Part shown: one piece after another, positions 7,637-49,829 of the stretch
How the letters are laid out: every line of letters begins with the position of its first letter
Position numbering within the stretch: the stretch's first letter is position 1
IMG/VR virus record: IMGVR_UViG_3300046703_000335
Span: 146,409-210,408 of that record
DNA length: 64,000 nucleotides
Strand: one strand, 5' to 3'
The notes under the pieces: generated by a model
What the model was told of the DNA's origin: nothing
The model's database searches: none
Seen by the model: only the letters and a program-made list of their open reading frames with translations
Translations under genes and position numbers: made by a program

Positions 7637-7662
7637 AAGATATCCTCGACTATAATAAATCT

Positions 7663-7677: not shown

Positions 7678-7710
7678 AAAAAGGCTGAGAGAAGTTATTC
7701 TCCCAGCCCC
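7677..7710 (-). terminator. Rho-independent terminator after actin-like gene
   Basis: Minus strand GGCTGGGAGAA-TAAC-TTCTCTCAGCC followed by TTTTTT. Confidence 0.75.
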
Positions 7711-7758
7711 TTGCAGAAAGCTGTTCTTTCGCAAACAGCTAATTGATCAATATCTTAC

Positions 7759-8769: not shown

Positions 8770-8783
8770 AAAAACCTCCTAAA

Positions 8784-9464
8784 TTATATTGATTTAGATT
8801 TCAACTCTTTAAGTTTTTTCAATGAATCAGACACGCTATCTCCAGAATCAATTGTCCGTACTTCTAACTTTATGTGTGAATTAGCATCTTCTACCCGAAT
8901 ATTAGGGATATAAACATCTTCTACCCGTCGACTATCTCCTTGTATAGATGCTGAATTCACACCAGATCGACTAATAATACCTTCAAGTTTTTCAAGTATA
9001 CCATCACTTTTATTACTCTGCATCCGTACTTCTATACTCTTTAAAGCATCTTGTATAACCGATAAATCAATAGAAGTAGGATTTTTTTCTAATTTCTCAA
9101 GTCTATCTAATATAATAGCCAAAGCATCATTATTCTGCGTTGAAGGAAGAGAAAGATTAGATTGATTTTTAACTGTTGCTTCTAAATCTTTAATCTTATC
9201 TAATAAGACTTCTATTTCTGGAGATGAGACTGATTCAGAAGATTTAATCTCAGAGGATATAATAGGTGTTTGAATATCAAAAGAACCTGTGGTATCTTCA
9301 GACTTTTTGAGAACTATAAGAATCTTACGTTCGATTGCGCGTTTTAAATCAACAGAACTTTCATATTGAGCATCAGTATAAACTTTCTGCTGCTTATAAT
9401 ACACACAATCGTTAAGATCTTTAAGTTCTACCTTCTTTGGGGAATTTCCAATGATATAGAACAT
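8784..9464 (-). CDS. Coiled-coil protein, possible partner of the actin-like ATPase
   Basis: 226 aa with repeated heptad segments (LLDKIKDLE, ILDRLEKLE, ILEKLEGII); directly upstream of the actin-like gene. Confidence 0.6.
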   Translation of the reverse strand: MFYIIGNSPKKVELKDLNDCVYYKQQKVYTDAQYESSVDLKRAIERKILIVLKKSEDTTGSFDIQTPIISSEIKSSESVSSPEIEVLLDKIKDLEATVKNQSNLSLPSTQNNDALAIILDRLEKLEKNPTSIDLSVIQDALKSIEVRMQSNKSDGILEKLEGIISRSGVNSASIQGDSRRVEDVYIPNIRVEDANSHIKLEVRTIDSGDSVSDSLKKLKELKSKSI

Positions 9465-29836: not shown

Positions 29837-31117
29837 TTATATATTCAATGGTAACTTTTTTTCATTATCCCTATCTTTACCATTAGAAAATACTATATTA
29901 TTTACTTTAAACGTCTTACCTTTAAAAGTCTCATCCCCTATAAAATTGTCCATGGAATCTTTTTTAACATATGCTATAGTAACATGGGGATTGTATGTCG
30001 GGAATGTGCTTTCATTTTTTATCTTTTTTACGAGATTATAATACAATTTCTCAAGATCTCCAGATTCTACTTCAATCTTAAGAACATCATATTCTTTTTT
30101 ATCCTTAAATGCATTAATCAAACCAAGGCGTACTTCAAAAGGTTTAATTTCTCCAATAATCTTTGCAGTCCTTATAGGAGAATCATCTGTAATCCCATAA
30201 AGCACTGTTACATGAATATCATCCTCTCGACCTTTTGAATTATCCCCTTCTACATATAATTTATTACCTGGTACATTATCCTTACCCCATTTTATAATTG
30301 ACTTAGATAAGGCATCCGGTAAATTGATTTTAGTACACGAATACTCATACTTCACTCCGGTTTTTGCAACTTTTGTACGTACATCAACGTAGGTACTAGA
30401 AGGAACATCATAAGTGAAGATAATTGATTCTGGATTGCGATTAGAAAATGTTTTTTTTACATGTTCAATATCTTTATAATTCTTAAGAAATGCCAAAGAG
30501 TTATCCGGATCAGAGAGACTTTTAATACTAAATGTGTTAAATCCTGTAGTAGCTTCACCATACTTTGGAATTCTTATAGTCTTACCAGAGAAAATATCAT
30601 TCACTACTTTTGGGATGGAATCCGTATCCAGGCGTTCAAATTTAAAATCTATAGCCCTTGAGGTACCTTTATCTGGAGATACGAAAGGCATAGCCATTTT
30701 TGAAAGTGTATTCGCGCACTTTCTTATTTTTGAGCTAATACTTTTCAAATTTTTTTCCTTTAGTTTATTTAAAAACTTTTTTACACTGTCGATACTGTCA
30801 AATTCCTTGACTATGCCACTACGCCTACCTATAAGTTCAAGAAATTTCTTTTCCCTATCTGATTGGTTACCGCCATTATAGAAAATAACATAATCTGAAT
30901 TTATCATCCCAGCTATTTCTTTATAAGTATTCTTTGCTGGATCATAATTATTATCAAAAGGGTCTAATAGGTATAAGTCTCCTCCAAACTCTTTCTCGAT
31001 TTCTTTACGCCAACTGTTATTCTGACAGTCTCCACCAAGAAAAATAACAGGGGTACCAGATTTTGGAGCGTTAACAATATCTTTATCAGATAAATAGGAT
31101 GTAATTAAACGAATCAT
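29837..31117 (-). CDS. Fusion: nucleoside 2-deoxyribosyltransferase-like Rossmann domain + 2H phosphoesterase (Acb1/T4 gp57B-like)
   Basis: N-terminal VIFLGGDC..SWR..LLDPF..EIAGMINSDYVIFY; C-terminal GREDDIHVTVLYG and YNPHVTIAYV (two HxT motifs). Confidence 0.7.
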   Translation of the reverse strand: MIRLITSYLSDKDIVNAPKSGTPVIFLGGDCQNNSWRKEIEKEFGGDLYLLDPFDNNYDPAKNTYKEIAGMINSDYVIFYNGGNQSDREKKFLELIGRRSGIVKEFDSIDSVKKFLNKLKEKNLKSISSKIRKCANTLSKMAMPFVSPDKGTSRAIDFKFERLDTDSIPKVVNDIFSGKTIRIPKYGEATTGFNTFSIKSLSDPDNSLAFLKNYKDIEHVKKTFSNRNPESIIFTYDVPSSTYVDVRTKVAKTGVKYEYSCTKINLPDALSKSIIKWGKDNVPGNKLYVEGDNSKGREDDIHVTVLYGITDDSPIRTAKIIGEIKPFEVRLGLINAFKDKKEYDVLKIEVESGDLEKLYYNLVKKIKNESTFPTYNPHVTIAYVKKDSMDNFIGDETFKGKTFKVNNIVFSNGKDRDNEKKLPLNI

Positions 31118-32989: not shown

Positions 32990-33748
32990 TTAACTATTAT
33001 GTGGTAAATTAGATCTATCTGTTTTTACCATTGGAGCATTAGGGGTAAAAGGAATTTCACCTGATCGGACTAACTTATCACGAAGACTCACACCACCATG
33101 CATAATATCCCCTTCTAATTTCTTCTTACCATCAGTATAAGTAATCAATCGAGCGGTATTACCAAATGCATCCTTTAGTTCTTCAACATTTTTTACAGTT
33201 TTATCAGCTTGTCCAGGTTTTCGAGAATTTTGTGCATCATCTACATTTACGCTATCCTGAAAACGAGACTTATGATGCTCAGCTTCTTGTTTATGATAAT
33301 TCTCCATAACTATCGCAAAACTTTTAGGATCCCCTTTTTCAAGTTGTCTCAAATCCTTAGCAGTATAAGTAACTGTGCCTCCCTGAGGAGCCTTAACTGT
33401 AATGGGGCTACCTTTTGCTTCTACCTGAGAAAGAAATGAAGAAGCAAGTACCATAGCTAACATAGCCAAGGATCTTATCTTAGGACTAACACCCATAGCT
33501 TCCTTATCCCCTATACCCTCTGTAGAAGGCGTATTCAAGTATTTCGCAACAATCTCAGCAGCATTCTGGGGATTAAGCGTAATACCTACCTCACGTGCCA
33601 ATTGAACTGCTTCAGGGGGGAAAGTAGTCATGGCTTCCAAAGATTCAGAAATCTTATCAATTTCATAAGCTTCTTTTAAATACCCATGAGACTCTACTGA
33701 ATCAGCAATTTTATCAAGAGCTTTAGCTATCTTCAAAAATTCACACAT
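32990..33748 (-). CDS. Hypothetical, probable head-internal protein with one hydrophobic helix
   Basis: KIAKALDKIADSVESHGYLKEAYEIDKISESLEA tag; KEAM; hydrophobic SLAMLAMVLASSFL. Confidence 0.55.
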   Translation of the reverse strand: MCEFLKIAKALDKIADSVESHGYLKEAYEIDKISESLEAMTTFPPEAVQLAREVGITLNPQNAAEIVAKYLNTPSTEGIGDKEAMGVSPKIRSLAMLAMVLASSFLSQVEAKGSPITVKAPQGGTVTYTAKDLRQLEKGDPKSFAIVMENYHKQEAEHHKSRFQDSVNVDDAQNSRKPGQADKTVKNVEELKDAFGNTARLITYTDGKKKLEGDIMHGGVSLRDKLVRSGEIPFTPNAPMVKTDRSNLPHNS

Positions 33749-33808
33749 ACTATCTCCACCTTCTATAGTGATTCAATAAACATACACGTCATATCCCTTA
33801 TACGCGAT

Positions 33809-33823
33809 ATTAATAGACTATTA
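33809..33823 (-). promoter_or_regulatory. Putative late promoter motif copy
   Basis: ATTAATAGACTATTA, 61 nt upstream of ATG 33748. Confidence 0.55.
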
Positions 33824-33840
33824 ATTTTTTAATAACCTTG

Positions 33841-33869
33841 TTGTTATGCTCATTCTAAACCAGTATATT
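33841..33869 (+). promoter_or_regulatory. Sigma70-type promoter
   Basis: TTGTTA-N17-TATATT, then AAGGAG RBS and ATG 33899. Confidence 0.5.
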
Positions 33870-33898
33870 ATTAATAGACACACTAACAAGGAGACTTT

Positions 33899-34405
33899 AT
33901 GTTGAATAAGAAACTAATAATCATGTTGACCGTAATTTTAATGTCAGTAATTAATATCTCTGCAAAAAATATCCTCAGCATCTATGATAGTCATAAAAAG
34001 CTATATACCAGCAAGTCACTGAACCCTGCTTATATTGGACCTCTATTTGCCACTGGGGGAGCCATGACAGACATTAACCGGTATATCAACAATATGGCAC
34101 CAGAGAAGATTGGGCATTTCACCAGTAATACTTTAGTTCTTATTGAAACAGACACCCTCCTAAATCAGGTGTATACATTTAATAAAGTGACAGCCTATAA
34201 TGTGACAAAAGATACCAATAGCTTTAATATAATGCACATAGTTGGTACTCTGGGGGGAGAAAAGTATGATATAATTGTAGAAATAAAAGAGGGACCAGAG
34301 TATGATCGGATCATCACGATCTATAAGAATCTTAAACCTATAACAATAATTTTGTGGTTAGATAATTCAAAAATTACTCAGAAGAAAGCTCCTACTACTA
34401 TCTAA
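33899..34405 (+). CDS. Secreted hypothetical protein (moron-like)
   Basis: Signal peptide MLNKKLIIMLTVILMSVINISA; own promoter and terminator; opposite strand. Confidence 0.65.
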   Translation: MLNKKLIIMLTVILMSVINISAKNILSIYDSHKKLYTSKSLNPAYIGPLFATGGAMTDINRYINNMAPEKIGHFTSNTLVLIETDTLLNQVYTFNKVTAYNVTKDTNSFNIMHIVGTLGGEKYDIIVEIKEGPEYDRIITIYKNLKPITIILWLDNSKITQKKAPTTI

Positions 34406-34419
34406 CATCATATAGCAGT

Positions 34420-34460
34420 AAAGGCTCCTGGTACAAAACAACCTGTACCAGGAGCCTTTT
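34420..34460. terminator. Bidirectional terminator between convergent genes
   Basis: AAAGGCTCCTGGTACA ... TGTACCAGGAGCCTTT 16-bp stem. Confidence 0.8.
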
Positions 34461-34475
34461 TAATACACTATCCGT

Positions 34476-37058
34476 TTACATAAACTCTTTTAAGAATCTT
34501 CCATGATCAGCAGCAATAGGAGCTACTTTGAAAAGTTCTTCTTTTAGCGAAGCATATTTCTTACCAGCATTAAACAATCGCTTCATCTTAAGAGTATAAT
34601 TATTTCCTCGAATCTTCCCATACTCATAGAAGGACAGAGCTTTATTCTGTGCGAGGCATTCTTTAAAATACTCTGACACTATTATAGTAGGAGTCTCAGC
34701 CTGATATTGTGGTATCATCCCACAGGCTTCTATAAACTTATTCCAACTACCATAATAGTGCTCAATAACATGTGAGGGTGCCCCCAAAATTGATTTTTCA
34801 CGATAGGTCTCTCGAGACATCCCTAATTTTAAGCTAACTTCTTTAAACTTATTCTGGATTGTATTCTCGTCAAAAGATACCGAAAAAGCTCTTTTATTTA
34901 CTTCATGTGGAGCATCAGTGCACTTTATAATATTATCATAACTGTTTTTTAAGTTAACCCAGTTAATCGAGTCCTTAACATGTCTGGAAAACAACAAGAT
35001 AACTTCATAACTGTCTGAGGTAGTCACATGCTTAAAAGGTATTCTCAACACTTTAAATAACTTATACCCTAAATTACTACATGTGTTTATTGATCTTTCA
35101 ATAAGGGGAACTTTTTGGTTGGGGCTATAACAGACACCGAATACTCCATCCTCCCTCAAGGATTTAATACAACCTTTTACAGTAGCATCCCAATACTGAG
35201 TCAACCAATCGGAAAGTTCTGGAAATCTATTGATACTTTGAGATTCTTCATTAGAATAGCTTTCATAATCAAAGTATGGTGGTGATGAAAATGCTAATCC
35301 AAAATAATTCGTGTAAGGGATATCAACTTCAGAGCCCTTATTGTGTACACAATAATTTCCCCCTAAGTTAGCTTTTACAAATGCTCCGAAATTTAATAGA
35401 TTTTCATATGTTATAGTATTAGGCTCAAAACCTACATACTCCATACCTAAAGACATTGCTGCCAGCATCCTTGAACCAAAACCAGCAGAATAATCTAATA
35501 CCTTACCATTTTTACAAAAGTTGGCATATATATACCTAGCTATTGAGGGCTTAAAGTTACTTACAACAGTATTCATTAACTTTAGCCCTTTACGCATTGA
35601 AGAATCATTTATTCTATCTGCGTACCTCAACCTATTCTCTACTAACTTTTTAAAAAAAGTCTCATCAACCCATACATCTATAGGTGCTGGATAACCTTTA
35701 CGTTTACTGCTATATATATTCGGAAAAAACTTCTCGCATAATTCCATCCCAGAGGTGTTAAAGCTTAAGAGATCGCCATCACATGTTGAAATCCCGTTGT
35801 CTTTAAAGCTCCTTAACAAATAAAGAGCCCTACTGTCTGATATGTCTGAAAATGGAAAAGGTTTCCCCCAATATTGCTCAAAAGTCATATTAAACATCCG
35901 GGCCTTCATAACATCATTACCTACCCTATAAAATTTAGGATGTACCATTAATGGGGTTAAGGTATTAACCTTATCGGGGATTAAGAACTCTTCAGGTATC
36001 TTATATAGGACATCCGGAGTGGCTACTTGATATACAATATCAAAAAATTCCTTATAAAATTTTTTAGAAAAACTTATCCCACTTTTATAAAGCTGAAAAC
36101 CCCACCCCAACTTATTCTCTAAAAAATCAACAAAAGCACTTAGTTGTTCCTTTATAGGGCAATAATTATTAATTATAAGAAATCGAGAATCATCATCGTA
36201 ATAACCATCATCTATAAACCAATAGGCCAATATTCTTTCATCCCAGTACTCTGAAATTAAGTCTATTGGAATTAGCTTACCTTCAACACCCTCTTTATAA
36301 AAAGATTCTCTAAACTTTGAGAAATGTTCACTCTGAATTGTTGCAAAACGTAACCCTGTTCCGTTATCACAGGGGTAGCAATTAGTGGAATAAGGTTCTA
36401 AAAGTTTATGTTTTAAACGAAGGTACTGCTCTTGTTTTAATGAGTGACTCTCATAATATCTTGGAGAAGAATCTATTCCACCATCCCCAAGTAGACCACC
36501 AATAATTAAGACAATCTGATTATGTGTTAAAGGAGGAGACTGCTTCTGTGTTTTTAATAAAATCCCTTTATCTTGTATTATAGGTCTCCAAGTAGTTTTT
36601 GAAACACCATATTTAGAAGAAAATTCTTCTTGTGTTAATTCATAATAATCTTTTTCAAGAACTTCTTTTGGAGTCTGTATGACTCTTTCTTTTTGTATAT
36701 CATTAACTTTTATAGATATCCCAAGATTCAATTTCTTCCTTCTATATGCTACACCCTCTCCAGACATCTTAAAAAGTTTGCCAATATTTGAATCTGTTTT
36801 TCCTTCAGCGTGCAAGGTTCTCAAGATATCATCAGTGAGTTTATTCTTAAGATCTTTTCGTATACCCTCATACACCACAGTAATTTTCGAGTTATATGCC
36901 CCTCTACTATCCGAAGTAATACCATAGGTTTTCATTCGCTTAAAGATTGCATCTTCTGAGACACCAAAAATTCCACCTATAGCTTTTGCAGTAAAACCAA
37001 AATCGCAATATAGCCTTTTTATGGATTCCATATTTAATTCTTCGATAGTATACTGCAT
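34476..37058 (-). CDS. Fusion: HTH repeats + LAGLIDADG endonuclease + amino (N4C/N6A) DNA methyltransferase + homing-endonuclease-associated repeat
   Basis: IIGGLLGDGGI and LAYWFIDDGYY; MTase motif I LDYSAGFGSR and motif IV FSSPPYFDYE; PSHVIEHYYGSWNKFIEACG; 860 aa. Confidence 0.8.
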   Translation of the reverse strand: MQYTIEELNMESIKRLYCDFGFTAKAIGGIFGVSEDAIFKRMKTYGITSDSRGAYNSKITVVYEGIRKDLKNKLTDDILRTLHAEGKTDSNIGKLFKMSGEGVAYRRKKLNLGISIKVNDIQKERVIQTPKEVLEKDYYELTQEEFSSKYGVSKTTWRPIIQDKGILLKTQKQSPPLTHNQIVLIIGGLLGDGGIDSSPRYYESHSLKQEQYLRLKHKLLEPYSTNCYPCDNGTGLRFATIQSEHFSKFRESFYKEGVEGKLIPIDLISEYWDERILAYWFIDDGYYDDDSRFLIINNYCPIKEQLSAFVDFLENKLGWGFQLYKSGISFSKKFYKEFFDIVYQVATPDVLYKIPEEFLIPDKVNTLTPLMVHPKFYRVGNDVMKARMFNMTFEQYWGKPFPFSDISDSRALYLLRSFKDNGISTCDGDLLSFNTSGMELCEKFFPNIYSSKRKGYPAPIDVWVDETFFKKLVENRLRYADRINDSSMRKGLKLMNTVVSNFKPSIARYIYANFCKNGKVLDYSAGFGSRMLAAMSLGMEYVGFEPNTITYENLLNFGAFVKANLGGNYCVHNKGSEVDIPYTNYFGLAFSSPPYFDYESYSNEESQSINRFPELSDWLTQYWDATVKGCIKSLREDGVFGVCYSPNQKVPLIERSINTCSNLGYKLFKVLRIPFKHVTTSDSYEVILLFSRHVKDSINWVNLKNSYDNIIKCTDAPHEVNKRAFSVSFDENTIQNKFKEVSLKLGMSRETYREKSILGAPSHVIEHYYGSWNKFIEACGMIPQYQAETPTIIVSEYFKECLAQNKALSFYEYGKIRGNNYTLKMKRLFNAGKKYASLKEELFKVAPIAADHGRFLKEFM

Positions 37059-37090
37059 CTTATTCCCCCTATTATGTAAATTATTAAGTA

Positions 37091-37119
37091 AGTATACTAT
37101 ATTTTACGCCAATAATCCA
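37091..37119 (-). promoter_or_regulatory. Sigma70-type promoter for the LAGLIDADG-MTase gene
   Basis: TGGATT-N17-TATACT on minus (weak -35), then AGGGGG RBS. Confidence 0.4.
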
Positions 37120-37145
37120 TAAATTTTAGATCCTTATGCACAAAT

Positions 37146-37181
37146 AAAAAAGGATTGGTAATTTTACTTACCAATCCTAAA
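37146..37181 (-). terminator. Terminator after major capsid gene
   Basis: AGGATTGGTAA / TTACCAATCCT stem with T run on minus. Confidence 0.7.
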
Positions 37182-37242
37182 ATGATAACCTGATGTTTTA
37201 CTTTAAGGTAGTATGTAAACACACTACCTTTACAGTTGAAAA

Positions 37243-39252
37243 TTAGCGAGCTATCTTAACCCTTGTAATTGCCAATGGGTTATGGCACCCAATACCTAAA
37301 TTTTCGAAGACTGAAAATCCTATTCTTCTTGCCTTTGGATCATCAGCAGATAGTACTGTAAGTTCGGTACGTACAGGAATGCGCCCGAAAAATTCTGGTT
37401 CTGCGCAAACATAAGCATAACCAGGATTAACTTTTCTGCTGACGATGATCTGAGCACCCCAAACGGTACCAAGTAGACCACTCTTAAGCAATGTCCCTTG
37501 AGTTTCAATATCAAGAACGTCTCTTCCCCATTTTCTTAAATCTGCAAAGTCAAGAGCGTTCATGAAAATACGAGCAACTCGAAGATCATGAGTCTCAATA
37601 CGTGCAAAAGCGTCAATCAAGTTTGCAGGTGTAAGAGGAGCAACAGCATTGATCTGTGCGTTTACATATGCACTTCCAAGATTGTCAAAACCAAACTGAG
37701 AAACTGCATCCATAACATCAAAGGCACGTGCATCTTCAGCAGCTTGAATTTGAGCTTTTGCCAAATCCTGTGCGCGTTCGATAAGGTCAAAACGACGTTC
37801 TTTGATCTGTGTCAAAGGCAGTTCAGGATTCGATGCTATTTCGAAAAGAGGGAATATCACACGGCGAGGTTTTGTGATCGCCAGAATGTTTTCACCTTCT
37901 TCTCCGACAACGAAAGCAGTGACGTTAGGATCTTTGTCGTAAATTGGCAGCGCACCATCAGGGAGCTGTTCTACGAGAAAAGCCTTACGTGCAACTGACG
38001 TATAATCTCTGCGAAGACGCAGAGGCTGGATCCACTTTGTTACTACCCTATTTAAGGGCGTATGAGTCTTTCAACTCATATCTCATGGTTACCCATGAGT
38101 TCAGACTGTATCACTACCTGTTATATACAGGTACTCGGCATGTCTTGACAAATTACTCTGTCAAGGTAGGTCTTATCGCCATTACCAAAACTTGGTATTA
38201 GGCTTCCCTCAGTCGTTGAACCTTCAATGGGGTTTCCCCCAAAGCTTGGCTGCTGATTGTCCTTTGAACGATATCTCTTAGGTAACTTATAGATCAAATC
38301 ATTAGTAATATTATCACGGATATACTCATAAGCAGTATCTCTTGATTCCTTCAAAACCCTAATATGGCATTCACCATCAGAGTTCTCAGTAACACTTACA
38401 ACCAGGTTTAAAACATCCTTAAAGATATCTATAACCAGTTCTTTGTTGTTTTTGAAAAAGCTATCATAAGACACTATAGTAAACCCGTAATCACCAACCG
38501 CCCCATCATCCATCCACCAAAAAGACAACCCTACACCAGTAAGTTCACTTAGTAGTTCAGCACTCAGTACCTTTGTACCTTCAGGATAAAACTTTTTTCT
38601 TAACTCTGTAAATTGATGCAAGGCATAACTCCTTGCATCAACATATGAAAAAAGTTCTCCACCGGATATAAAAGCTCTTTCACCATAAAATACTTTAGCA
38701 GTAAAAAGGCTTCATTATCTCTGCTTTTCTAAGCAATAGTTGCTCTTGTTTCACACTATGCCTACAAAGCCAATATCCAGTCCCAGATGATTGTACTGCA
38801 ATGCAGGAATCCCCAAACAAACTCCCATGCAGAAATTCTTTCTGATAGCTATTTAACGGAACCAATCTTAATGCGTTACGATTCAAATGATAGCCCTTAT
38901 TTGTACTAATACCATAGATACTTCTTAAGGTACAAACTACTCTATCAGTTAAACCATATTTTTCACCTATCTCAATATCGCATAAACCAGCATTGATGTA
39001 CTCTTCAACAAGCACATCTTCCGGCAAAACACTTATAAGTCTTGCCAGTTTCTCTTCGCTGATTATTACGTTATTGATCTTCATACCTACCCATCGTTCA
39101 AAGGATGTTCCAGACAATTTACCGAGTTTTACGTCCACCATCCAGAATCAATTAATGGACGCCGCTAACTTTGCACGGCCAGAAGCAGTCTTAATGTAAT
39201 CTCCAATGATCTGTTGTTTCAGTTCATTAGTGATTGTGTTTGTTCCTTCCAT
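37243..39252 (-). CDS. Major capsid protein (HK97 fold), 295 aa after splicing: exon 1 39252-39155, exon 2 38032-37243
   Basis: Exon 1 MEGTNTITNELKQQIIGDYIKTASGRAKLAAS+AT (AGGAGG RBS) joins G+IQPLRLRRDYTSVARKAFLVEQLPDG.. in frame with track ORF 37243..37860 (IFMNALDFADLRKW, GTVWGAQIIVS, GFSVFENLGIG); follows protease, scaffold and decoration genes. Confidence 0.9.
38033..39154 (-). ncRNA. Group I intron (1122 nt) in the major capsid gene
   Basis: 5' exon ends in U pairing with G of IGS GTGGACGT (P1); CTGGAT pairs with 3' exon ATCCAG (P10); P AAATTGTCTGGAA, Q AATCAGCAGCC, R TTCAACGACTGA, S GATACAGTCTG; P3 CTCGGTA/TGCCGAG; P9 hairpins; terminal G. Confidence 0.9.
38121..39084 (-). pseudogene. 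Intron-encoded HTH-LAGLIDADG homing endonuclease split by a 1-nt frameshift near 38705
   Basis: Motif 1 FLHGSLFGDSCI in ORF 38695..39141, motif 2 LSFWWMDDGAV in ORF 38121..38621; removing one T from CCTTTTTAC gives a continuous 320-aa frame (..MKPFTAKVFYGERAF..YALHQFTELRKKFY). Confidence 0.75.
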
Positions 39253-39331
39253 TTCACTTCCTCCTAAAAAAATAAGTTTTCTGCGTGTCTACTATATCAT
39301 ATTATGGATTATTTTCACGGCTAACGATTAA

Positions 39332-39910
39332 TTAGATCGAAAGCTGAACAACCATAAATGGATCAGTTGCACTTGGAGCAATCAATACGATACCAACTAC
39401 GAAAGCTGCAACATCAACAGCTGTACTAACAGCATTGCTGAGCAAGCCATTCTGAGAAACATAAAGTCTTGCACCAGGAAGATATGTGATAGGAACTCCG
39501 GCACCAGCCTGAGTACATGTCTCATACATATCTGTTGAGAAAACGGTACCTGTTCCATGTAAATATGGGCATTTACCACTTGCTACACCAGAGCTTGACT
39601 CGAAAGGATAACCAACAGCGTTATTAATCGCAACACCAACTGGGCGACCAACAAGAACTGATGGAGCTGCATCTGTACCTGTACATGCTACGACTGTTCC
39701 GTTCACTGTTCCAACACATACAAACTGACCTGCAAGAATACCCTTAGGTGTGTCAGCACTAAGACGAGAATTCGCCAAAGATTGAACATTTGCACCGTAG
39801 TTATCTCTTGTCAGTCCAGCCGCTGTCAGATTCATGAGAGTATTCATTGTCACGCGATTGAGGATATTTAGGCCTCTATCAGGGGCAATTCCACTTCCTT
39901 CACCAACCAT
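39332..39910 (-). CDS. Head decoration/cement protein
   Basis: Between scaffold and MCP; SGVASGKCPYLHG..TDMYE..GARLYVSQNGLL..VGIV beta-rich pattern. Confidence 0.65.
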   Translation of the reverse strand: MVGEGSGIAPDRGLNILNRVTMNTLMNLTAAGLTRDNYGANVQSLANSRLSADTPKGILAGQFVCVGTVNGTVVACTGTDAAPSVLVGRPVGVAINNAVGYPFESSSGVASGKCPYLHGTGTVFSTDMYETCTQAGAGVPITYLPGARLYVSQNGLLSNAVSTAVDVAAFVVGIVLIAPSATDPFMVVQLSI

Positions 39911-40031
39911 GTTAAACCTCCTATTAAATGAAACCCAATCCCCTTATGGGGCGGGTAGATACTGTTAAAAATCTTATATCGATCTTTTTACTACTGATAC
40001 CCCTCTAATAAAGTGGGGTATCGAATATCAC

Positions 40032-41039
40032 TTAATTAAAAATTTCTCTTACATCCGGAGCAGTAGACCATAGACTTGATAAGTCACTGGAACCACTTGA
40101 AGAAGCTTCTTTCTTAACCATACCGGAAAGTTTTGAAGCACCCTTCTTGATAGGAGAAGGCATAACACCACTGAAAATCTGATCAAGAAGACTTGCATCT
40201 TTTGATGAGCCTTCTTCTTCATCTTCTTCTTTTTTATCCTTGGAGGAAGCTTCGACTTCTTCTTCATCTTCTTCTTTTTTGGCAGAAGCTTCGACTTCTT
40301 CTTCGTCTTTGCCTACTTCTTTTTCAAGCTCTTCAGCTTGCTTTTTCAGGCTGGCAAGTTTTTCTTTTTTCTTTTTAATGTCCAGATCCTTAGTGCCGGC
40401 TTCTTTTTCTTTCTTATCATCTTCGTCTTTGTCGGCAGAGGCATCCTTCTCTTCTTTATCCTTATCATCTTCATCTTTGTCAGCAGAAGCATCCTTCTCT
40501 TCTTTATCCTTGTCATCTTCATCTTTGTCAGCAGAAGCATCCTTCTCTTCATCTTCTTCATCAGAAGAATCAGAAGCAGCTTTTGCGATCATCTGAGCGA
40601 GACCTTCTTGGTTTGCAAGAGTCGCATTAAGGCCCTCTTCAGGAAGATGCATAAGAATACCCGCCTGCTTCTCGATAATCTCGTCTGTAGCACCAGGAAG
40701 CATTCTCTGTGAAGCAATAATAGCTTTGACAGCTTTCTCTTCAAGTCTACGAGCACTTGCGATAGCTTCTTGAGCAGCATGTTTATCAATAAGAGGAGCA
40801 TGACCAGTCTCTTCACGTTTCTGATCATCTTTATTTACTTTGTCTTTATTAACGCCTTCATTCCATGCTTCAGGATCACCCTTAGCATATTCACCGACAC
40901 TTGGATTATTCTTGCTGTGTCCAGTATCATTCATATCAAAAACATCATTGTCAATTCCAGAACCCTTATCTTCAACTTGGGCACCTGGTTTTGACTTCAT
41001 ATCCGAAGCTAATCTGTTAGTCAAACGATTACGAGACAT
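40032..41039 (-). CDS. Probable capsid scaffolding protein
   Basis: Highly charged and coiled-coil, between protease and decoration/MCP; C-terminal LSSLWSTAPDVREIFN. Confidence 0.65.
   Translation of the reverse strand: MSRNRLTNRLASDMKSKPGAQVEDKGSGIDNDVFDMNDTGHSKNNPSVGEYAKGDPEAWNEGVNKDKVNKDDQKREETGHAPLIDKHAAQEAIASARRLEEKAVKAIIASQRMLPGATDEIIEKQAGILMHLPEEGLNATLANQEGLAQMIAKAASDSSDEEDEEKDASADKDEDDKDKEEKDASADKDEDDKDKEEKDASADKDEDDKKEKEAGTKDLDIKKKKEKLASLKKQAEELEKEVGKDEEEVEASAKKEEDEEEVEASSKDKKEEDEEEGSSKDASLLDQIFSGVMPSPIKKGASKLSGMVKKEASSSGSSDLSSLWSTAPDVREIFN
40413..40550. repeat. 48-bp tandem repeat x3 coding EEKDASADKDEDDKDK
   Basis: gcatccttctcttc recurs at 40441, 40489 and 40537. Confidence 0.85.
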
Positions 41040-41136: not shown

Positions 41137-43989
41137 TTACTCTTCAAATTGAGATAAAATCTTAGCCCATGAAGCTAACTTTTTACACTCTCTCTGACTT
41201 GGCTTGCGACCTATCTCAACTATCATCTTTGTGAAAAAGGGCACCATTCCTGTTGATCCAAGTTTGACTCTGGATAAAGTCTTAACTGCATCTGTACCAA
41301 CAGGGATATTAGAAGCATTCTTATCTATAAAGTGCAATATCCCTAAAACATCATCACGAGTGTACCCATACTTTTTAAATTGTTTCCAATTCTTAGTATT
41401 AGATAAAATCATAATACCATTGTACAGCCGATCATTTTTTGTATCTCTTGCAGAAGCTAAAATCTTTTTAAAACTAGCGGACTTGTTCACTAAGTTATCA
41501 TTTGTAGAAGTCTCTTCATCCGAAGGACGTCCACTATCTCCGCCATCTTGCTTAGCCTGATCCTTCATGATCTCTCTACGAATCTGATTAAGCAATTGTC
41601 TCTTTACCATATCTTTTACTTCACCGACTGTAGCATCCTCTTTAGGTTCTTCTATCTGAGGTTCCGGAGCTGCTGCGGGAGCACCACCCAAACCACCACC
41701 AAGATCATCACCAGGAGCACCCATAGAATCCGCAGGAGGAGCTGCTCCCTCTGCTGGAGGGGTATCTACGGTAAGAGGCTTATCTGCTTCTGGGGGAGCT
41801 TCAGGGAAGCTGAAATCATCTTTTGGAGGAGCCGGTGCATCGCCTTCAGCAGCTTCAAGATCTCTTACGATATCCTTTGCTGATTGAGCTGCTGACTTCA
41901 GGTACATTCCCGGGGTATAATCAAACCCTGGCATAACTACAGCTTTTTGTATCTTATCAGATACGTCAAAATCACAAGGAAGAACTTTATGAAGCACTGC
42001 CCCTTCAAAGGCAGGTTTACGTACCCAACTTGCATCTATAAATTTACAACTCTCAGGGTCGTCAACGCTGCCACATAATTCTGCTATTATCCTTTTTGTA
42101 CCATTCTTATCATAGAAATAATTACCTTTAAAATATTTTATATGCTTGCAAGATTGGGACTCATCTTCAGCTATACAACCGCACTGTGTACAGATACTAT
42201 ATTTTATCAAGCATCCCATTGACACAGCGGAATATTCACCAGATTGAATCTTATTTACAAGATCTGTATGCTTCTTATTAGTAGCTATAAGGATATCTAC
42301 GTACAGAGAAGTAAGGTCATTACCGTTTACATCTTTTGCAAAGGGTACCTCTCTCAAAGCCATATCAATAACTTTGCCTTTTGACAATTCAGAGATCTGG
42401 ACGTGTTCACAGTTATGCACTGTTACACCTTCAGCAACATAAGAGTTATCCCCTTCAACCTCTATGTTATAAACATCAAAAGTACCTTCTAAATCTCTTA
42501 TTCCATCTATTTTAGATATAGTCCATTTATTCCCACCATCTTCAAATACATGGGTTATCTTTTTAGATAATCTATCTGAAATCCTGGTATCTGTATGTCC
42601 TACAATTTCATTTAACTTTTTAGAATCCCTTGTAGATATCCTTAAAAAATATCCAGGTCTTGACTTCTTATTAGTAATTGGGTCTGTATATACTTCATAC
42701 CCATCAATTAACTCACAATCTGTATATCTCGGTAAAACCCCAACTTCCCTATAATTCGGAAGTATCCCCATTCTCCAAAACATCCAGTTAATTTGTTGAA
42801 TTAACGCTTGTGATTTAAGCTCTAGGCAATAACCTCTTGAGGTATGCTCTCCACACCCATCTCCATTAATACAATGCTTAACTATTATAGCCTGTAATTT
42901 TTTGGGGAGCCACATTGCCTCTTCTGGCATTTTTTTAGCCCAGGAATATTTACCACACCACTTCTTAAAAAACTGAGCTACTTCCTTATTACTAATTGAT
43001 AGGCAGTATGATCCTGATTGAGTTTCATACAATCTTGGTTTGCAATCTATTCTAAAAGTACTTCCAAATTCTTTTATTAATAGATAGGATAGCCTTTCAG
43101 CTACATCAGTCTCTTCATTACCAAGGGCAAAGGTTACTCCTGACTCTTCATCAGAAAAGACATTCTTATTATCATAATAACCTTCGGCAAGAAACCACCC
43201 TATTAACTCCGCTCTAGCTTCATTTATCTCATCATTAGGAATTTCGACTAACGATACAGGATGAGTAAAGAAATCTCTATCAGAATTAATATCCCCAGCA
43301 TTTTTCCATTCTGATGTTATCCCCCTTGGGTAAACTTCACCGGATGCTCTATGCACTCCGACAGAAAAACCTGTCCAGGTATCTAATAAACCAAAATTTG
43401 CATCTTTATCAAAAAAATTAGGACGACCTGTTTTTGGACAAGTCTCACGAGCATGGTATACCCAAAAAGGGTGATTTCTAGTTACGCATATTTTCCTAGA
43501 GAGAATATTCAGACCTGACATCTCTACTAAGTTATCAGCCTGATGCTTAAAAGTTCTTGTTACTTTTCCTATTTCACCCTTACGATTTATAACCCTATCA
43601 CCTTCGACTACCTGTTCTATAGCTTTATACGTACCATCAGCCATTAATACCCGTGTACCTGCTACAAAACAAAAATTATCAGCCCCAAGAAAACTCTTTG
43701 AAGCCATCCTCAATAATTTGGTTTCCCAGCTGTCTCCATTATTATTTACAAAAATTGAATATTCAGGTTTGATCAGATAGTTACTCTTAGGATCTTTTGG
43801 ATCAGCTAAGTCGACATCTACTGAGGCCATTATAGAAACATGACTAAGTAGCCATTTGGATGGATCAAACTGAGCTACAACATTTTTTGCTACAACAATG
43901 CGACCTTTTGGAACAACATTGTCCACCCATTTACCAGGGCAGACAACTTTATTCACTACAGCAGCATGTCCAAATTTAAGCATTGCCAT
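41137..43989 (-). CDS. Prohead (maturation) protease, intein-containing; about 530 aa after splicing
   Basis: NNNGDSW, F|CEH (probable catalytic His), AVSMGC (Ser), CTQCG..CKH, DASWVRKPAFEGA. Confidence 0.8.
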   Translation of the reverse strand: MAMLKFGHAAVVNKVVCPGKWVDNVVPKGRIVVAKNVVAQFDPSKWLLSHVSIMASVDVDLADPKDPKSNYLIKPEYSIFVNNNGDSWETKLLRMASKSFLGADNFCFVAGTRVLMADGTYKAIEQVVEGDRVINRKGEIGKVTRTFKHQADNLVEMSGLNILSRKICVTRNHPFWVYHARETCPKTGRPNFFDKDANFGLLDTWTGFSVGVHRASGEVYPRGITSEWKNAGDINSDRDFFTHPVSLVEIPNDEINEARAELIGWFLAEGYYDNKNVFSDEESGVTFALGNEETDVAERLSYLLIKEFGSTFRIDCKPRLYETQSGSYCLSISNKEVAQFFKKWCGKYSWAKKMPEEAMWLPKKLQAIIVKHCINGDGCGEHTSRGYCLELKSQALIQQINWMFWRMGILPNYREVGVLPRYTDCELIDGYEVYTDPITNKKSRPGYFLRISTRDSKKLNEIVGHTDTRISDRLSKKITHVFEDGGNKWTISKIDGIRDLEGTFDVYNIEVEGDNSYVAEGVTVHNCEHVQISELSKGKVIDMALREVPFAKDVNGNDLTSLYVDILIATNKKHTDLVNKIQSGEYSAVSMGCLIKYSICTQCGCIAEDESQSCKHIKYFKGNYFYDKNGTKRIIAELCGSVDDPESCKFIDASWVRKPAFEGAVLHKVLPCDFDVSDKIQKAVVMPGFDYTPGMYLKSAAQSAKDIVRDLEAAEGDAPAPPKDDFSFPEAPPEADKPLTVDTPPAEGAAPPADSMGAPGDDLGGGLGGAPAAAPEPQIEEPKEDATVGEVKDMVKRQLLNQIRREIMKDQAKQDGGDSGRPSDEETSTNDNLVNKSASFKKILASARDTKNDRLYNGIMILSNTKNWKQFKKYGYTRDDVLGILHFIDKNASNIPVGTDAVKTLSRVKLGSTGMVPFFTKMIVEIGRKPSQRECKKLASWAKILSQFEE
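42412..43671 (-). mobile_element. Intein (420 aa) with LAGLIDADG endonuclease in prohead protease
   Basis: Starts CFVAGTRVLMADG; block B TRNHPFWV; LIGWFLAEG and HCINGDG; ends YVAEGVTVHN followed by Cys. Confidence 0.9.
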
Positions 43990-46403: not shown

Positions 46404-49400
46404 TTAACCCTTAGACATATATTCAGCTATTTTATCCAACTTTTCAGGATGCTTCATAACTACAGAAATAAGTTTAGTTAATGCTGCCTGTTTCTTACTA
46501 TCTAACCCTGCAGAAGAAAATCTACCCATACCTCCACCGCCAAGACCCCCACCGCCAAGACCCTCGCCTAACCCGCCCTCTTCCCCAGCAGGTGGTGGTG
46601 GAAGCGGATCAAGATTAAGATACTCAGCAAGTCGATCAGCCACTGTAAATCGTTCGACCAGCGCCTGTCCTGCGGCACTATAGATATTTGCCAAAAGTTG
46701 ATTGAATGCAAAGTCATTGACTGTGAACAAATCAGCTTCAATCTTTTTACGAGTAGAAATAGGATCGATATTAAGCATCTCAAGGATCACATCTATGGAA
46801 ATTGATCCTTTATTATAAAGCTGCATAGCCTGGTCAAAGAAAGTATCGTTATCTTTGATAGCAAGACGTGTAAAGCTTAATCGTGGATATATAAGTTTTT
46901 CTCTTCCGTATTTATCCTTCTCAATAAAACCTTTTTTTCTCGCCACAGGTTTAAAGAGATAATCCTCAACATATTCCTGAAGGAGTTCCCGGAATAAGAG
47001 GTACTGGGTATTTAGAATCTCGAGAGTCATCTTATTACCCGCATATGTACCTTCACCGGTCAAAATCTCTCGGGTAACTCCAAGACCTGCAAATAAGCTA
47101 TTCTCAATGTGCTCATACTCACTGGAGAGTTCTAAGAGACGACCATTTGAACCCATTTCTTCCCAGTGAACTTCATAGTTGGCAATGATAGAGAAGTCGG
47201 GATCAACAAGAGCAGTGTCCACTTGTTCCCTTAAATTCTCGATATCCACATCAGATAACTCTTCAGCCCATACTACCCGTATTGGGGTCATATGCCGGGA
47301 TGCTATCTGTGTCTGAGCCTGACGAAGCTTATCCTGTAGTAGTAACGAGTTAATACATCTTTCAAGAATTGATACTCCAAGAGTCTCATATTGACTTTTT
47401 TTACGAGCCATATGATAAACATATGACCCACTGTATGGATCAGTATCAAGAGGGATACTACCATTCTGTTGAAGATCCATAGAGAGTGACTTGGGTAATC
47501 GTGGCATGGCACTCTCCTCTTCCGGACTAAGCGGGAAGTAGGCAGGATCCTGCGAACTGAGAATACTCTTACGGGTTTCCGGATCAGGAATAAATTCTAT
47601 AAGGCTCTCATCCGAAAAAGGAATCTTTTTGATACGGACCTGGTCAGGTGGGAGGATTATTAACTTTCTCCAGCCCTTATAATTTGGATCCTTATCAATA
47701 ACTTTAAATTCTTTGAAGAGTCTCTCAGACTCTATTCTTCCCCACTCCTTAAGCTCTGCTACTTTAGCTTTACCCTCTTCATTACCCTCATCTACTTCAT
47801 ATGGGTTGTGGTCCTCCGCATAAGTAAAACAGTTGTGCGTGCTATATCCTGCTACCTGATATGTATGATCCTCTTCCACTTCAAAGTTATAAACGAAGTC
47901 ATTATAAGCTGTCTCTTCTATTGTTTTAACTTTAAATGCTATATCCCCATCAATATTAATCCAATATCTATTATCATCAGGGAAATGAGCATCATCAGGT
48001 AGGCTCTTATTAGAATATTGGGTTAGTATGTCACAGGAAGTTTCATCAGAGGCAGTTAATATATATGCATCTCTTACTACTTTTAGGGTACCATTTGGAA
48101 GAACGCATTCCCTGTTAGAAAAGTGATTTAAGCTACACACAGCACCACATTTAAGAGAGATATCCCTAATATTATCGATTAAACCTTTTGAGACCGTGGT
48201 ACAAGAAACAATAGTATGTCTTTTAGGACCCGCCACAGTGACACACCCATCTGAATCAACAATCCCTGCTAAAAAGTTCTTTAACTTTTCGATAGGTAAA
48301 TTTATAAACCACTCAGGTATCCTTTTTAGATTTTTACCAAGAGATGTTTCACCAAAGTTACTTGACCACCACTCTATAAATGCAGGGTTAGAATTTACTT
48401 TAAGATAAGTCATCCCCTCACATGTCCATACTTTTATAGCATCGATACCAAAGATCTTTATTAATATTCGATATAATCTATCGATTTCTATTACACATGT
48501 TTCTTTAGCAGATATCTGCCACAAACCTCTACCCCAGTTACTACGTGAGGAATCCCGAGAGAGAGTTCCATCCCCAGCCCAGAAACCTACTAAATAAGCG
48601 AAATCATCATCTATCTCAAGAGTATCTATTGCATTTAGAAACTTCTGTCTCTTATGTATGTACGTACCAGTAATTTCAATACTGGAGGTATCCGTTGGTA
48701 GCCATCTTACTTGTGATCCTTTTTGATATCCTTTAGCTCCTATCCGCTCATGAAACTTAGTATCTATAATCTCCTGTAATGAACTCACAGCAGCATTTAA
48801 TGATCGTAAGGGCACATCAAAAAGTTCAGCGAGTTCTTGATGAGTTTTTATTATAGGTTCTTTTAAAGCATTAAGCCAATTTAAAAGTCCTTTTTTAGCA
48901 GTAATCGCTTTTTCTGATCTTGGCTGATTTATCGTAACATTTGATATATATCCCCCATCAACTTTTGTATAGGTTGATGGAAAACTAAGAGGCAATTCAT
49001 GTACATCTGACACCTCTACAGGCCATGTTACTCTTATGTAGTCTTTTAAAGTTAAATCTTCAGCTTCAATAAAGATAAATTCCCCGTCTCTAAATACCTC
49101 TACAGGGTGCTCTCCTGTAATGGGTAACTCTTTAAATGTCTTCCAGGTATTTATCTTATATATAGTATCTGAGGGTCTACAAAATTTATTAGTTACTTTT
49201 CGATATCTTCCTTTATTCGTTAGTAGATAATCACCGATAGCTACTTCATCAGCTCTTTTAATGCCTGATAGCGTCTTTATTTCAGCGTAATTAGCCAGGC
49301 AATTACCTAACAAATGGTATTCGTGGCTTATCTCGAGTAAGGTCTTAAAAAGCTTGGTTTCACTACATAATTCTAAAAAGAACTCATATACATAGTCAAT

Positions 49401-49829
49401 CTGTTCCTGATTATCCCCATGAGGTTTTTCAAGCCTAATTTTAGACAAAGGAAGAGTAGAATGGAGATCGATCGCCTGTCCTACAAACTCATTTGCATTA
49501 TAAAAGTTTCGATACCAGGCGCGTCGTTCTCGTAAATTTTGCGGTTTCTCAAGAAAGTCAGTAGATAGCTGAGGAGAATAAAAGTTACCTTGAGAACTCT
49601 CTGATGTACCACCACTACTATAGCCTCCACCAGAAAAAGCTGAGCGGGTATTAAACCCAAAATTACTTGTAGTAGCATACTTTTTTATCTTACGTACTGC
49701 TTTTTCTTTTTCAGTAAGTTTTGAGGAAGGCATAATGTTATCCCCATTCTTTACTGTGGCAGCAGTCTTTATCGTGGCAGCAGTCTTAGAGCGTACAGTT
49801 GTTTTAGTACGAGTTCCTTCTTTATTCAT
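46404..49829 (-). CDS. Portal protein, intein-containing; about 651 aa after splicing
   Basis: FYSPQLSTDFLEKP..WYRNFY..VGQAIDLHSTLPLS..HEYHLLGN|CF; GVSILERC; GLGVTREILTGEGTY; position upstream of protease. Confidence 0.85.
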   Translation of the reverse strand: MNKEGTRTKTTVRSKTAATIKTAATVKNGDNIMPSSKLTEKEKAVRKIKKYATTSNFGFNTRSAFSGGGYSSGGTSESSQGNFYSPQLSTDFLEKPQNLRERRAWYRNFYNANEFVGQAIDLHSTLPLSKIRLEKPHGDNQEQIDYVYEFFLELCSETKLFKTLLEISHEYHLLGNCLANYAEIKTLSGIKRADEVAIGDYLLTNKGRYRKVTNKFCRPSDTIYKINTWKTFKELPITGEHPVEVFRDGEFIFIEAEDLTLKDYIRVTWPVEVSDVHELPLSFPSTYTKVDGGYISNVTINQPRSEKAITAKKGLLNWLNALKEPIIKTHQELAELFDVPLRSLNAAVSSLQEIIDTKFHERIGAKGYQKGSQVRWLPTDTSSIEITGTYIHKRQKFLNAIDTLEIDDDFAYLVGFWAGDGTLSRDSSRSNWGRGLWQISAKETCVIEIDRLYRILIKIFGIDAIKVWTCEGMTYLKVNSNPAFIEWWSSNFGETSLGKNLKRIPEWFINLPIEKLKNFLAGIVDSDGCVTVAGPKRHTIVSCTTVSKGLIDNIRDISLKCGAVCSLNHFSNRECVLPNGTLKVVRDAYILTASDETSCDILTQYSNKSLPDDAHFPDDNRYWINIDGDIAFKVKTIEETAYNDFVYNFEVEEDHTYQVAGYSTHNCFTYAEDHNPYEVDEGNEEGKAKVAELKEWGRIESERLFKEFKVIDKDPNYKGWRKLIILPPDQVRIKKIPFSDESLIEFIPDPETRKSILSSQDPAYFPLSPEEESAMPRLPKSLSMDLQQNGSIPLDTDPYSGSYVYHMARKKSQYETLGVSILERCINSLLLQDKLRQAQTQIASRHMTPIRVVWAEELSDVDIENLREQVDTALVDPDFSIIANYEVHWEEMGSNGRLLELSSEYEHIENSLFAGLGVTREILTGEGTYAGNKMTLEILNTQYLLFRELLQEYVEDYLFKPVARKKGFIEKDKYGREKLIYPRLSFTRLAIKDNDTFFDQAMQLYNKGSISIDVILEMLNIDPISTRKKIEADLFTVNDFAFNQLLANIYSAAGQALVERFTVADRLAEYLNLDPLPPPPAGEEGGLGEGLGGGGLGGGGMGRFSSAGLDSKKQAALTKLISVVMKHPEKLDKIAEYMSKG
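47832..49301 (-). mobile_element. Intein (490 aa) with LAGLIDADG endonuclease in portal
   Basis: Starts CLANYAEIKT; ITGEHPV; LVGFWAGDG and LAGIVDSDG; ends YQVAGYSTHN followed by Cys. Confidence 0.9.

Follow-up and report, generated by a model that had tools for sequence, protein, structure and literature searches.

A large environmental phage carries, directly 3' of its major capsid gene, a mobile selfish gene in which a predicted LAGLIDADG homing endonuclease is fused to a predicted DNA methyltransferase. The gene was identified in a 64,000-nt stretch of IMG/VR record IMGVR_UViG_3300046703_000335 (positions 146,409 to 210,408; hereafter the window) and occupies window positions 34476..37058 (-). 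It is one uninterrupted ORF of 860 aa, starting with ATG and without internal stop. The pairing is common in phage metagenomes, yet no published description was found in literature searches for a LAGLIDADG-methyltransferase fusion, which did not cover most subscription journals. The original prediction of such a fusion was confirmed, whereas the interpretation attached to it was supported only in part (see below).

For domain assignment, profile, sequence and structure searches were combined. LAGLIDADG_2 (PF03161) matched residues 185-325 (E 3.1e-15, 57 bits against a cut-off of 25). Sequence matches to I-SceI and 6x1j and a Foldseek match to I-SceI (1r7m, E 3.5e-7, TM by target 0.64) agreed, and the predicted model had a pLDDT of about 90 over residues 180-350, consistent with the pseudo-dimeric alpha-beta-beta-alpha-beta-beta-alpha fold. 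The single-chain, I-SceI-type nuclease domain was assigned to residues 172-358 (35985..36545 (-)). Both LAGLIDADG helices end in metal-binding acidic residues, LLGDG with D192 (codon 36483-36485) and WFIDDG with D283/D284 (D284 codon 36207-36209). These residues were invariant in an alignment of 32 relatives, as were K261, Q209, E203, H205 and T240. Residues 1-170 (36549..37058 (-)) form three three-helix units in the AlphaFold model, of the helix-turn-helix kind found at the N-termini of phage homing endonucleases. They matched PHROGs 8446, 7545 and 9759 and, weakly, HTH_23. Some relatives lack the first unit.

The methyltransferase module consists of a helical N-terminal subdomain (residues 372-498, 35565..35945 (-)), also present in stand-alone relatives, and a Rossmann core (residues 499-695, 34974..35564 (-)). 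Motif I is DYSAGFG (residues 522-528, 35475-35495), followed by the acidic motif II residue E545, and motif IV is SSPPY (residues 591-595, 35271-35285). G526, G528, E545, P593 and P594 were invariant in the alignment, and D522 was at least 90% conserved. The order of motif I before motif IV is circularly permuted relative to PF01555. This protein scored 19.9-20.3 bits against PF01555, below the cut-off of 26.7, but 25 of 32 family members matched at E <= 0.1 (best 1.3e-10), and the fusions of four divergent related loci (L017, L082, L045 and L057) scored 56, 50, 47 and 28 bits. A PADLOC Type II methyltransferase model was collinear over residues 498-676. Phage tblastn matches started near residue 435, and stand-alone 'cytosine-N4' methyltransferases of 336-405 aa from AFDB and Atlas aligned to residues 365-700 with TM 0.70-0.84. 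These nearest sequence and structure relatives are annotated as N4-cytosine DNA methyltransferases by automatic pipelines only, and the fold search did not separate DNA from RNA enzymes, as matches included tRNA and rRNA amino-methyltransferases as well as DNA enzymes. The C-terminal helical module (residues 731-860, 34479..34868 (-)) carries the G-S-W-N...CG motif of the homing-endonuclease-associated repeat. Its PF18780 match was below threshold but recurred in 5 of 5 members tested at 13-23 bits. The module is absent in the ~705-aa relatives and showed no BLASTP similarity to a DUF7487-Mom protein encoded in the window. NCBIfam gave nothing useful for any domain.

The ORF is independent of introns and inteins. 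No Hint or Intein_splicing match was found in it, whereas three other genes in the window did match, and the only intron match within 33500-40000 lies in the capsid gene. Exon 2 of this gene (37243..38032 (-)) ends 184 nt upstream of the fusion ATG, and the gene was identified as a major head protein through its 92%-identical orthologue (phrog_2522, E 2.3e-53). An intrinsic terminator of the capsid gene with an 11-bp stem and a T-run is located upstream of the fusion gene at 37151..37178 (-). A 12-bp hairpin at 34423..34456 lies between the fusion stop codon and the stop of the convergent gene 33899-34405; it is followed by a T-run on the + strand and is a likely bidirectional terminator. A spurious Rfam 'mir-17' match fell on the same hairpin. 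A -10-like TATACT (37096-37091) and the ribosome-binding site AGGGGGA (37070-37064) precede the ATG at 37058. In the window alone, the best sigma70-like match was only 9/12, which is chance level, and the promoter scan gave 25 sites against 23.1 expected. In 15 orthologous loci with the same layout of terminator then promoter, however, 8 had matches of at least 10/12 and 5 had 11/12 at the same place, against a shuffle mean of about 8. The original prediction was right on the terminators, the position after the capsid gene and the absence of intein ends, while its claim of an own promoter holds by comparison with relatives, but not from the window alone.

A stop or frameshift separating the domains had been named beforehand as grounds for rejection. 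Contigs from three other peat metagenomes, assembled independently, covered the ORF including the LAGLIDADG-to-methyltransferase junction with substitutions only, so no frameshift separates the domains. Of the 18 listed strain-level substitutions, 12 are synonymous. The family comprised 75 full-length relatives at 28-71% identity, and about 86 of the best 150 cluster representatives spanned both domains. Two Atlas clusters of 255 and 57 members were all viral. Among 185,579 species genomes only one held the fusion, on a mis-binned phage contig carrying the same phage capsid gene. A megablast of 12 kb of the window against GenBank phages found nothing, and the phage has no close sequenced relative there. 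By tblastn, one unannotated 485-kb huge phage (LR745208.1) was found with a related LAGLIDADG-LAGLIDADG-methyltransferase ORF after its capsid gene.

For analysis of occurrence, related loci were compared. The gene was located directly after the highly conserved capsid gene in every locus examined. Of 54 non-redundant loci, 21 carried a fusion, 14 a LAGLIDADG-only gene, 17 nothing, 1 a methyltransferase-only gene (L013) and 1 a remnant. The closest relative by flanking genes, L014, has a clean empty site, in which the capsid stop is followed by the terminator and then the stop of the next gene. The fusion tree strongly conflicted with the capsid tree, and AU tests rejected congruence with p values of 6.6e-48, 2e-07 and 4.7e-94, although the clades used were named after the trees had been seen. 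The methyltransferase tree mirrored the LAGLIDADG tree. At least three lineages inside the main clade lost the methyltransferase (L051 and L055 keep a truncated stub) yet kept GDG and DDG, and a whole clade of LAGLIDADG-only genes uses the same site. The methyltransferase is therefore dispensable for the persistence of a nuclease gene there. To search for co-conversion, nucleotide identity along the capsid gene was compared between genomes whose fusions are close relatives and genomes that are close by capsid protein. Identity was flat at about 70-80% without a rise at the 3' end, so synonymous sites are saturated. Among the most conserved 20-nt stretches of the capsid gene across 78 loci, none stood out near the 3' end as a candidate target.

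The gene is best explained, with fairly good confidence, as a free-standing homing endonuclease gene at a homing hot spot, carrying a fused and selected methyltransferase, and not as a domesticated core gene. The domain architecture, conservation of both catalytic centres down to 28% identity, presence or absence at one fixed site, phylogenetic conflict with the capsid gene, co-divergence of both halves and restriction to phage contigs were established here, while cleavage, methylation, substrate, base specificity and homing itself are inferred. In this view, the element brings its own promoter region and terminator and encodes one protein with two working enzymes. When a carrier and a related phage lacking the element infect the same cell, the HTH modules and the I-SceI-type domain would bind a long site in or beside the 3' region of the capsid gene. 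The nuclease would cut it, and recombinational repair from the carrier would copy the gene into the break (intronless homing). As the insertion does not interrupt the capsid gene, which tolerates little sequence change, the carrier would need another way to avoid being cut. The fused methyltransferase most likely methylates carrier DNA, predicted to be at N4-cytosine from the SPPY/F motif and the nearest relatives, which would mark self DNA and block cleavage of the element's own target. Methylation can block LAGLIDADG cleavage (PMC3827243), and homing endonucleases act in phage-phage competition (PMC11620839). For the role of the methyltransferase, self-immunity is only tentatively preferred and by a narrow margin over anti-restriction cargo, with a comparable share left for both or another role.

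The original prediction had offered two alternatives, a one-gene selfish element protecting its own allele by methylation while cutting competing phage or host DNA, or a methyltransferase guided by a domesticated LAGLIDADG. The selfish and mobile part of the former is well supported. Protection of its own allele is plausible, but remains a hypothesis weakened by the lineages that lost the methyltransferase and kept intact nuclease motifs, and cutting of host DNA is unlikely for an I-SceI-type enzyme.

The strongest rival, possible though less likely, is that the methyltransferase is beneficial cargo, an ordinary short-motif orphan phage enzyme which protects phage DNA from host restriction and is unrelated to the nuclease target, with fusion merely guaranteeing co-transfer. 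Stand-alone relatives of the module are common in phages and giant viruses, its N-terminal subdomain could act as target-recognition part, the nuclease persists without it, and L013 carries a methyltransferase-only gene at the same site. The phage also encodes a Mom-family DNA-modification protein, so evading restriction matters to it. However, cargo genes normally travel as separate ORFs, whereas here the halves stayed in one frame and co-diverged down to 28% identity. Moreover, the methyltransferase lies between homing-endonuclease-type DNA-binding modules, and the same methyltransferase family is repeatedly fused to other such modules, which suggests targeted rather than genome-wide methylation.

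Domestication of the nuclease, with the LAGLIDADG domain only steering the methyltransferase to a specific place, for example as a regulatory mark near the capsid gene, is very unlikely for this family. LAGLIDADG folds have been recruited as pure DNA binders in WhiA and maturases, and related phage methyltransferases are fused to nuclease-free homing-endonuclease DNA-binding domains such as I-TevI_DNA-bd, DUF7487 and DUF723, so the idea is not absurd for relatives. D192, D283, D284, K261 and Q209 are however invariant in 32 members, the motifs are kept even in methyltransferase-less derivatives, and sporadic occurrence with horizontal movement is not expected of a fixed regulatory gene. Still less likely is a restriction-modification-like weapon which degrades unmodified host or foreign DNA at many sites. 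The layout of nuclease, methyltransferase and C-terminal DNA-binding part resembles MmeI-type enzymes, and a promoter-like signal recognised by host polymerase would allow early expression. Yet I-SceI-type enzymes recognise sites of about 18 bp, too rare for bulk degradation, conserved DNA-contacting strand residues point to one conserved target, the gene is absent from cellular genomes apart from the mis-binned phage contig, and presence or absence at one locus is a homing pattern. Joining of two adjacent genes by an assembly or sequencing error is refuted by the independent assemblies and by the same continuous frame in 75 relatives from many studies.

With I-SceI and other single-chain LAGLIDADG_2 enzymes the protein shares domain family, metal-binding Asp residues and predicted fold. 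I-SceI, however, has about 235 aa and is encoded inside a group I intron, with its own allele protected because the insertion disrupts the target, whereas here the domain is free-standing within an 860-aa protein with HTH modules and a methyltransferase, and the neighbouring, presumed target gene is left intact. Like the free-standing phage genes for T4 Seg and Mob proteins and cyanophage F-CphI beside psbA (general descriptions in PMC2988022 and PMC2790892), the gene is an intergenic ORF with its own expression signals next to a conserved gene, sporadic among relatives and transferred horizontally. Those are GIY-YIG or HNH enzymes without modification enzyme, and immunity comes from sequence differences or an intron in the target. 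Type IIG/IIL/IIC enzymes (MmeI, BpuSI, Eco57I) likewise join a nuclease, an amino-methyltransferase with motif I before IV and a further DNA-binding part, and the logic of cutting unmodified and sparing modified DNA would be the same if self-immunity holds. They use PD-(D/E)XK nucleases, recognise short sites, cut at a distance and are cellular defence genes, whereas this nuclease is LAGLIDADG with its own presumed long-site reader, is phage-only and behaves as a homing element. With PF01555 N6/N4 methyltransferases (beta class, including N4-cytosine enzymes) and stand-alone phage or giant-virus 'cytosine-N4' methyltransferases it shares the SAM-binding motif D-x-x-G-x-G, the catalytic S-P-P-Y/F motif and the segment after motif IV, but differs in the permuted motif order and the score below Pfam's cut-off. 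In the ShiLan insertion (PMC11855218), a homing endonuclease and a DNA methylase also share one phage locus. There, an out-of-frame HNH gene invaded an actinophage methylase gene, while here both are one in-frame protein and the whole unit is the mobile element, inserted beside a capsid gene.

Homing endonucleases are thought to avoid cutting their own genome through target disruption or sequence differences, and restriction enzymes through methylation. This family, abundant in large environmental phages, joins the two principles in one mobile protein. In a more novel reading, which is possible though less likely than not, the protein would be a 'homing restriction-modification' enzyme whose methyltransferase methylates the nuclease's own long recognition site, giving sequence-independent self-immunity. 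This would let a homing endonuclease target an almost invariant stretch of an essential capsid gene without disrupting or recoding it, and discriminate carrier from competitor DNA by an epigenetic mark. The related methyltransferases fused to nuclease-free DNA-binding modules would then be anti-homing immunity proteins. If the methyltransferase shields the nuclease's own site, that would be a third route to homing immunity and would explain how a selfish gene can park beside an essentially invariant gene. In practice, the family offers natural single-chain meganucleases with a built-in, probably site-directed, methyltransferase, both activities being inferred from sequence, as a ready scaffold for methylation-gated cutting or targeted DNA methylation. 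The locus also shows how intensely capsid-module genes of these phages are colonised. The same window holds a group I intron, three inteins and this element, and is thus a useful natural system for studying phage-phage competition.

For domain assignment, the ORF at window positions 34476-37058 on the minus strand was translated as a single 860-aa protein. Pfam placed an I-SceI-type LAGLIDADG_2 domain at residues 185-325 (57 bits against a cut-off of 25) and gave sub-threshold matches to N6_N4_Mtase, to the homing-endonuclease-associated repeat and to HTH_23. PHROGs, PDB sequence search and PADLOC agreed on a homing endonuclease plus a Type II-like methyltransferase. An AlphaFold model built on 32 relatives was confident (mean pLDDT 87) and showed three N-terminal three-helix units, the LAGLIDADG core, a helical subdomain, a Rossmann methyltransferase core and a C-terminal helical module. 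The best solved match in Foldseek was I-SceI (E 3.5e-7), while the methyltransferase part matched class I amino-methyltransferases in general. Matches in AlphaFold DB, BFVD and ESM Atlas showed that residues 365-700 correspond to whole stand-alone phage and giant-virus proteins of 336-405 aa, which are annotated automatically as cytosine-N4 DNA methyltransferases. Motif I (DYSAGFG) precedes motif IV (SSPPY). The two segments match the C-terminal and N-terminal ends of PF01555, respectively, so the order is a circular permutation of the beta-class order. The observation made in the original prediction, a LAGLIDADG homing endonuclease joined to a DNA methyltransferase in one ORF, was thus confirmed at the level of sequence and predicted structure.

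Conservation of the fusion was examined in several collections. A search of 5.8 billion proteins returned 75 full-length relatives of 28-71% identity, on contigs of up to 474 kb. In an alignment of 32 of them, L190-G-D192-G, W280, D283-D284-G, K261, Q209, E203, H205, T240, G526, G528, E545-P546, E577, P593-P594, E599, Y601, Q607-S608 and W618 were invariant. Both catalytic centres are therefore under selection. An exhaustive profile search found 1,853 representatives at E <= 1e-30, and by our count about 86 of the best 150 had one continuous match spanning both the nuclease and the methyltransferase. The ESM Atlas holds two clusters (255 and 57 members, all viral) that are automatically named as LAGLIDADG plus DNA methylase. 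Contigs from three other peat metagenomes covered the ORF, including the domain junction, with substitutions only, and 12 of the 18 listed substitutions were synonymous. A stop or frameshift between the domains, which had been named beforehand as refuting the prediction, is excluded.

The gene upstream of the fusion is the major capsid gene, whose orthologue matched phrog_2522 'major head protein' at E 2.3e-53. In every locus examined the fusion lies directly 3' of this gene. These were the relatives L002-L009, the published 485-kb huge phage LR745208.1 and L090 (WJJK01000202.1). The latter is a 16.9-kb contig labelled as MAG Candidatus Altiarchaeales, which carries the phage capsid gene (92% identical), its neighbours and the fusion. 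It is almost certainly a phage contig binned into an archaeal MAG, so the UniProt/NCBI organism label for that protein is misleading. The capsid protein is 73-94% identical among these genomes, whereas the fusion is 28-71% identical. Between the capsid stop codon and the fusion ATG, 15 orthologous loci showed a GC-rich terminator followed by a sigma70-like promoter. At least 10 of 12 consensus positions matched in 8 of the 15 loci, and 11 of 12 in five, against shuffle means near 8. The best match in the window itself was only 9/12, which is chance level, although the window does keep the terminator (37178-37151), an ATAGTATACT -10-like element and a strong ribosome-binding site. Downstream, a 12-bp hairpin is shared with the convergent gene.

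The major capsid gene (37243-39252, minus strand) is itself split by a 1,122-nt group I intron at 38033-39154. Exon 1 ends at 39155 (U), the intron ends at G 38033, and joining of the exons restores the conserved AASMIQPL sequence. The Rfam Intron_gpI match at 38082-38340 scored 29.3 bits (E 1.6e-4), below the gathering score of 50. Relatives L023, L029 and L024 are interrupted at the same codon. Three other peat metagenomes carry near-identical strains with an intron-less capsid gene (38032/39173 joint). The 18 exon nucleotides next to the insertion point (39155-39172) differ at 7 positions, all synonymous (K-L-A-A-S-M is kept), which looks like target-site recoding or a co-conversion tract of the intron's own endonuclease. 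The LAGLIDADG_2 endonuclease of the intron is split into two ORFs in different frames (38695-39141 and 38121-38621, minus strand; 148 and 166 aa). It is probably a decaying pseudogene, and only the second piece matched PF03161 (51.8 bits). Three large proteins (41137-43989, 46404-49829 and 56112-59360, all on the minus strand) each contain an intein with a LAGLIDADG_3 endonuclease, as judged from Intein_splicing, Hint and LAGLIDADG_3 matches. With the intron and the fusion gene, that makes five LAGLIDADG-type mobile elements in 25 kb of the structural module.

Just upstream of the capsid module, a very acidic 335-aa protein (40032-41039, minus strand) has tandem KDASADKDEDDKDKEE repeats. It resembles a scaffolding protein, but PHROGs gave no match. 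A 426-aa protein (29837-31117, minus strand) has two H-x-T-type motifs and a match to 2',5' RNA ligase / 2H phosphoesterase (phrog_755, E 1.8e-10). Precomputed Pfam hits on its orthologues are 2_5_RNA_ligase2, and Acb1 only weakly or faintly, which hints at a possible anti-defence role. A 711-aa protein (16287-18422, plus strand) has three DUF7487 repeats (114 bits) followed by a Mom-family domain (33 bits). It is a second candidate DNA-modification enzyme fused to a repeat module, with no detectable similarity to the fusion protein. A Mom-family gene also lies two genes downstream of the fusion in L006.

For analysis of mobility, IMG/VR was searched with the capsid protein, which returned more than 550 relatives, of which 80 loci were kept and scanned with domain HMMs built from the family. 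Among 54 non-redundant loci with at least 2.5 kb of sequence downstream, 21 have a LAGLIDADG-methyltransferase fusion, 14 a LAGLIDADG-only gene, 1 a methyltransferase without LAGLIDADG, 1 a remnant and 17 nothing. L014 is the genome closest to the window by flanking genes, with the capsid 94% identical to the L002 reference protein (81-94% nucleotide identity to the capsid gene of the window) and neighbours 55-78%. It has an empty site, in which the capsid stop, one terminator and then the stop of the convergent gene follow within about 70 nt. Tandem copies occur in L017, L049, L057, L084 and L090, the last with two complete fusions (4989-7385 and 7337-9442). L045 (3594-6878) encodes a 1,095-aa protein with LAGLIDADG followed by two methyltransferase modules, and the locus of LR745208.1 (L001, 5143-8832) has a 1,230-aa stop-to-stop frame with two LAGLIDADG domains and then a methyltransferase. 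Truncated stubs are present in L051 and L055. In L042 (1948-2485), the first HTH unit of the fusion is separated from the rest by a stop codon and about 400 nt of unrelated sequence, which is either an insertion or the start of decay.

The fusion tree conflicts with the capsid tree. AU tests rejected the capsid clade on fusion data (p 6.6e-48) and the fusion clades on capsid data (p 2e-07 and 4.7e-94), although the groups were named after the trees had been seen. Only one of 185,579 species-representative genomes holds the fusion, and that is the mis-binned phage contig. The gene is mobile and not a fixed core gene, and this is the signature of a free-standing homing endonuclease gene at a homing hot spot.

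The relation between the two halves was analyzed on a tree of 46 LAGLIDADG domains from this site. The methyltransferase state changes at least 8 times, and at least 6 changes are forced by well-supported branches. Inside the main clade there are at least three nested losses, and the methyltransferase-less derivatives keep GDG and DDG. For proteins that have both halves, the methyltransferase tree mirrors the LAGLIDADG tree. The fusion is therefore old and evolves as a unit, but the methyltransferase is dispensable. The same phage methyltransferase family also occurs in ESM Atlas clusters fused to I-TevI_DNA-bd, DUF7487, DUF723 and ParB_N. At this locus in L013 (1578-3362) it is fused to an HTH plus an unassigned 200-aa region, with no LAGLIDADG. 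AlphaFold DB also lists a 723-aa protein with a TnsA-type endonuclease N-terminal domain, aligned over residues 4-689.

By comparison with described systems, the nuclease is a member of the LAGLIDADG_2 family and the gene behaves as a free-standing homing endonuclease gene. The methyltransferase is PF01555-like but permuted, and in this particular protein it scores below threshold. The protein is not a Type IIG restriction-modification enzyme, because the nuclease fold is different and the gene is not cellular. It is neither an intein nor intron-encoded. Full-text literature searches, in a library without most subscription journals, found no description of a LAGLIDADG-methyltransferase fusion, and the nearest report is an out-of-frame HNH inserted in an actinophage methylase gene (PMC11855218). 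The family that joins this known type of homing endonuclease to a methyltransferase is large, unstudied and directly testable.

The analysis itself establishes the architecture, the conserved catalytic residues, the mobility and the restriction to phages, whereas cleavage, homing and methylation by the protein are inferred. In the inferred mechanism, the nuclease would cut alleles that lack the element, near the 3' end of the capsid gene, in co-infecting relatives, and repair would copy the element in. No target site could be derived from the sequences compared. The insertion leaves the constrained capsid gene intact, so the carrier would need protection by some other means. The fused methyltransferase, predicted to be N4-cytosine-specific from SPPY/F and its relatives, is the obvious candidate, and methylation is known to inhibit LAGLIDADG meganucleases (PMC3827243). 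Of the two readings in the original prediction, that of a selfish element that protects its own allele by methylation is partly supported, in that mobility was found while protection remains a hypothesis. The main rival is that the methyltransferase is anti-restriction cargo. The recurrent fusion of this methyltransferase family to other homing-endonuclease-type DNA-binding modules (I-TevI_DNA-bd, DUF7487, DUF723) favours site-directed methylation, and the repeated loss of the methyltransferase argues that immunity can be obtained otherwise.
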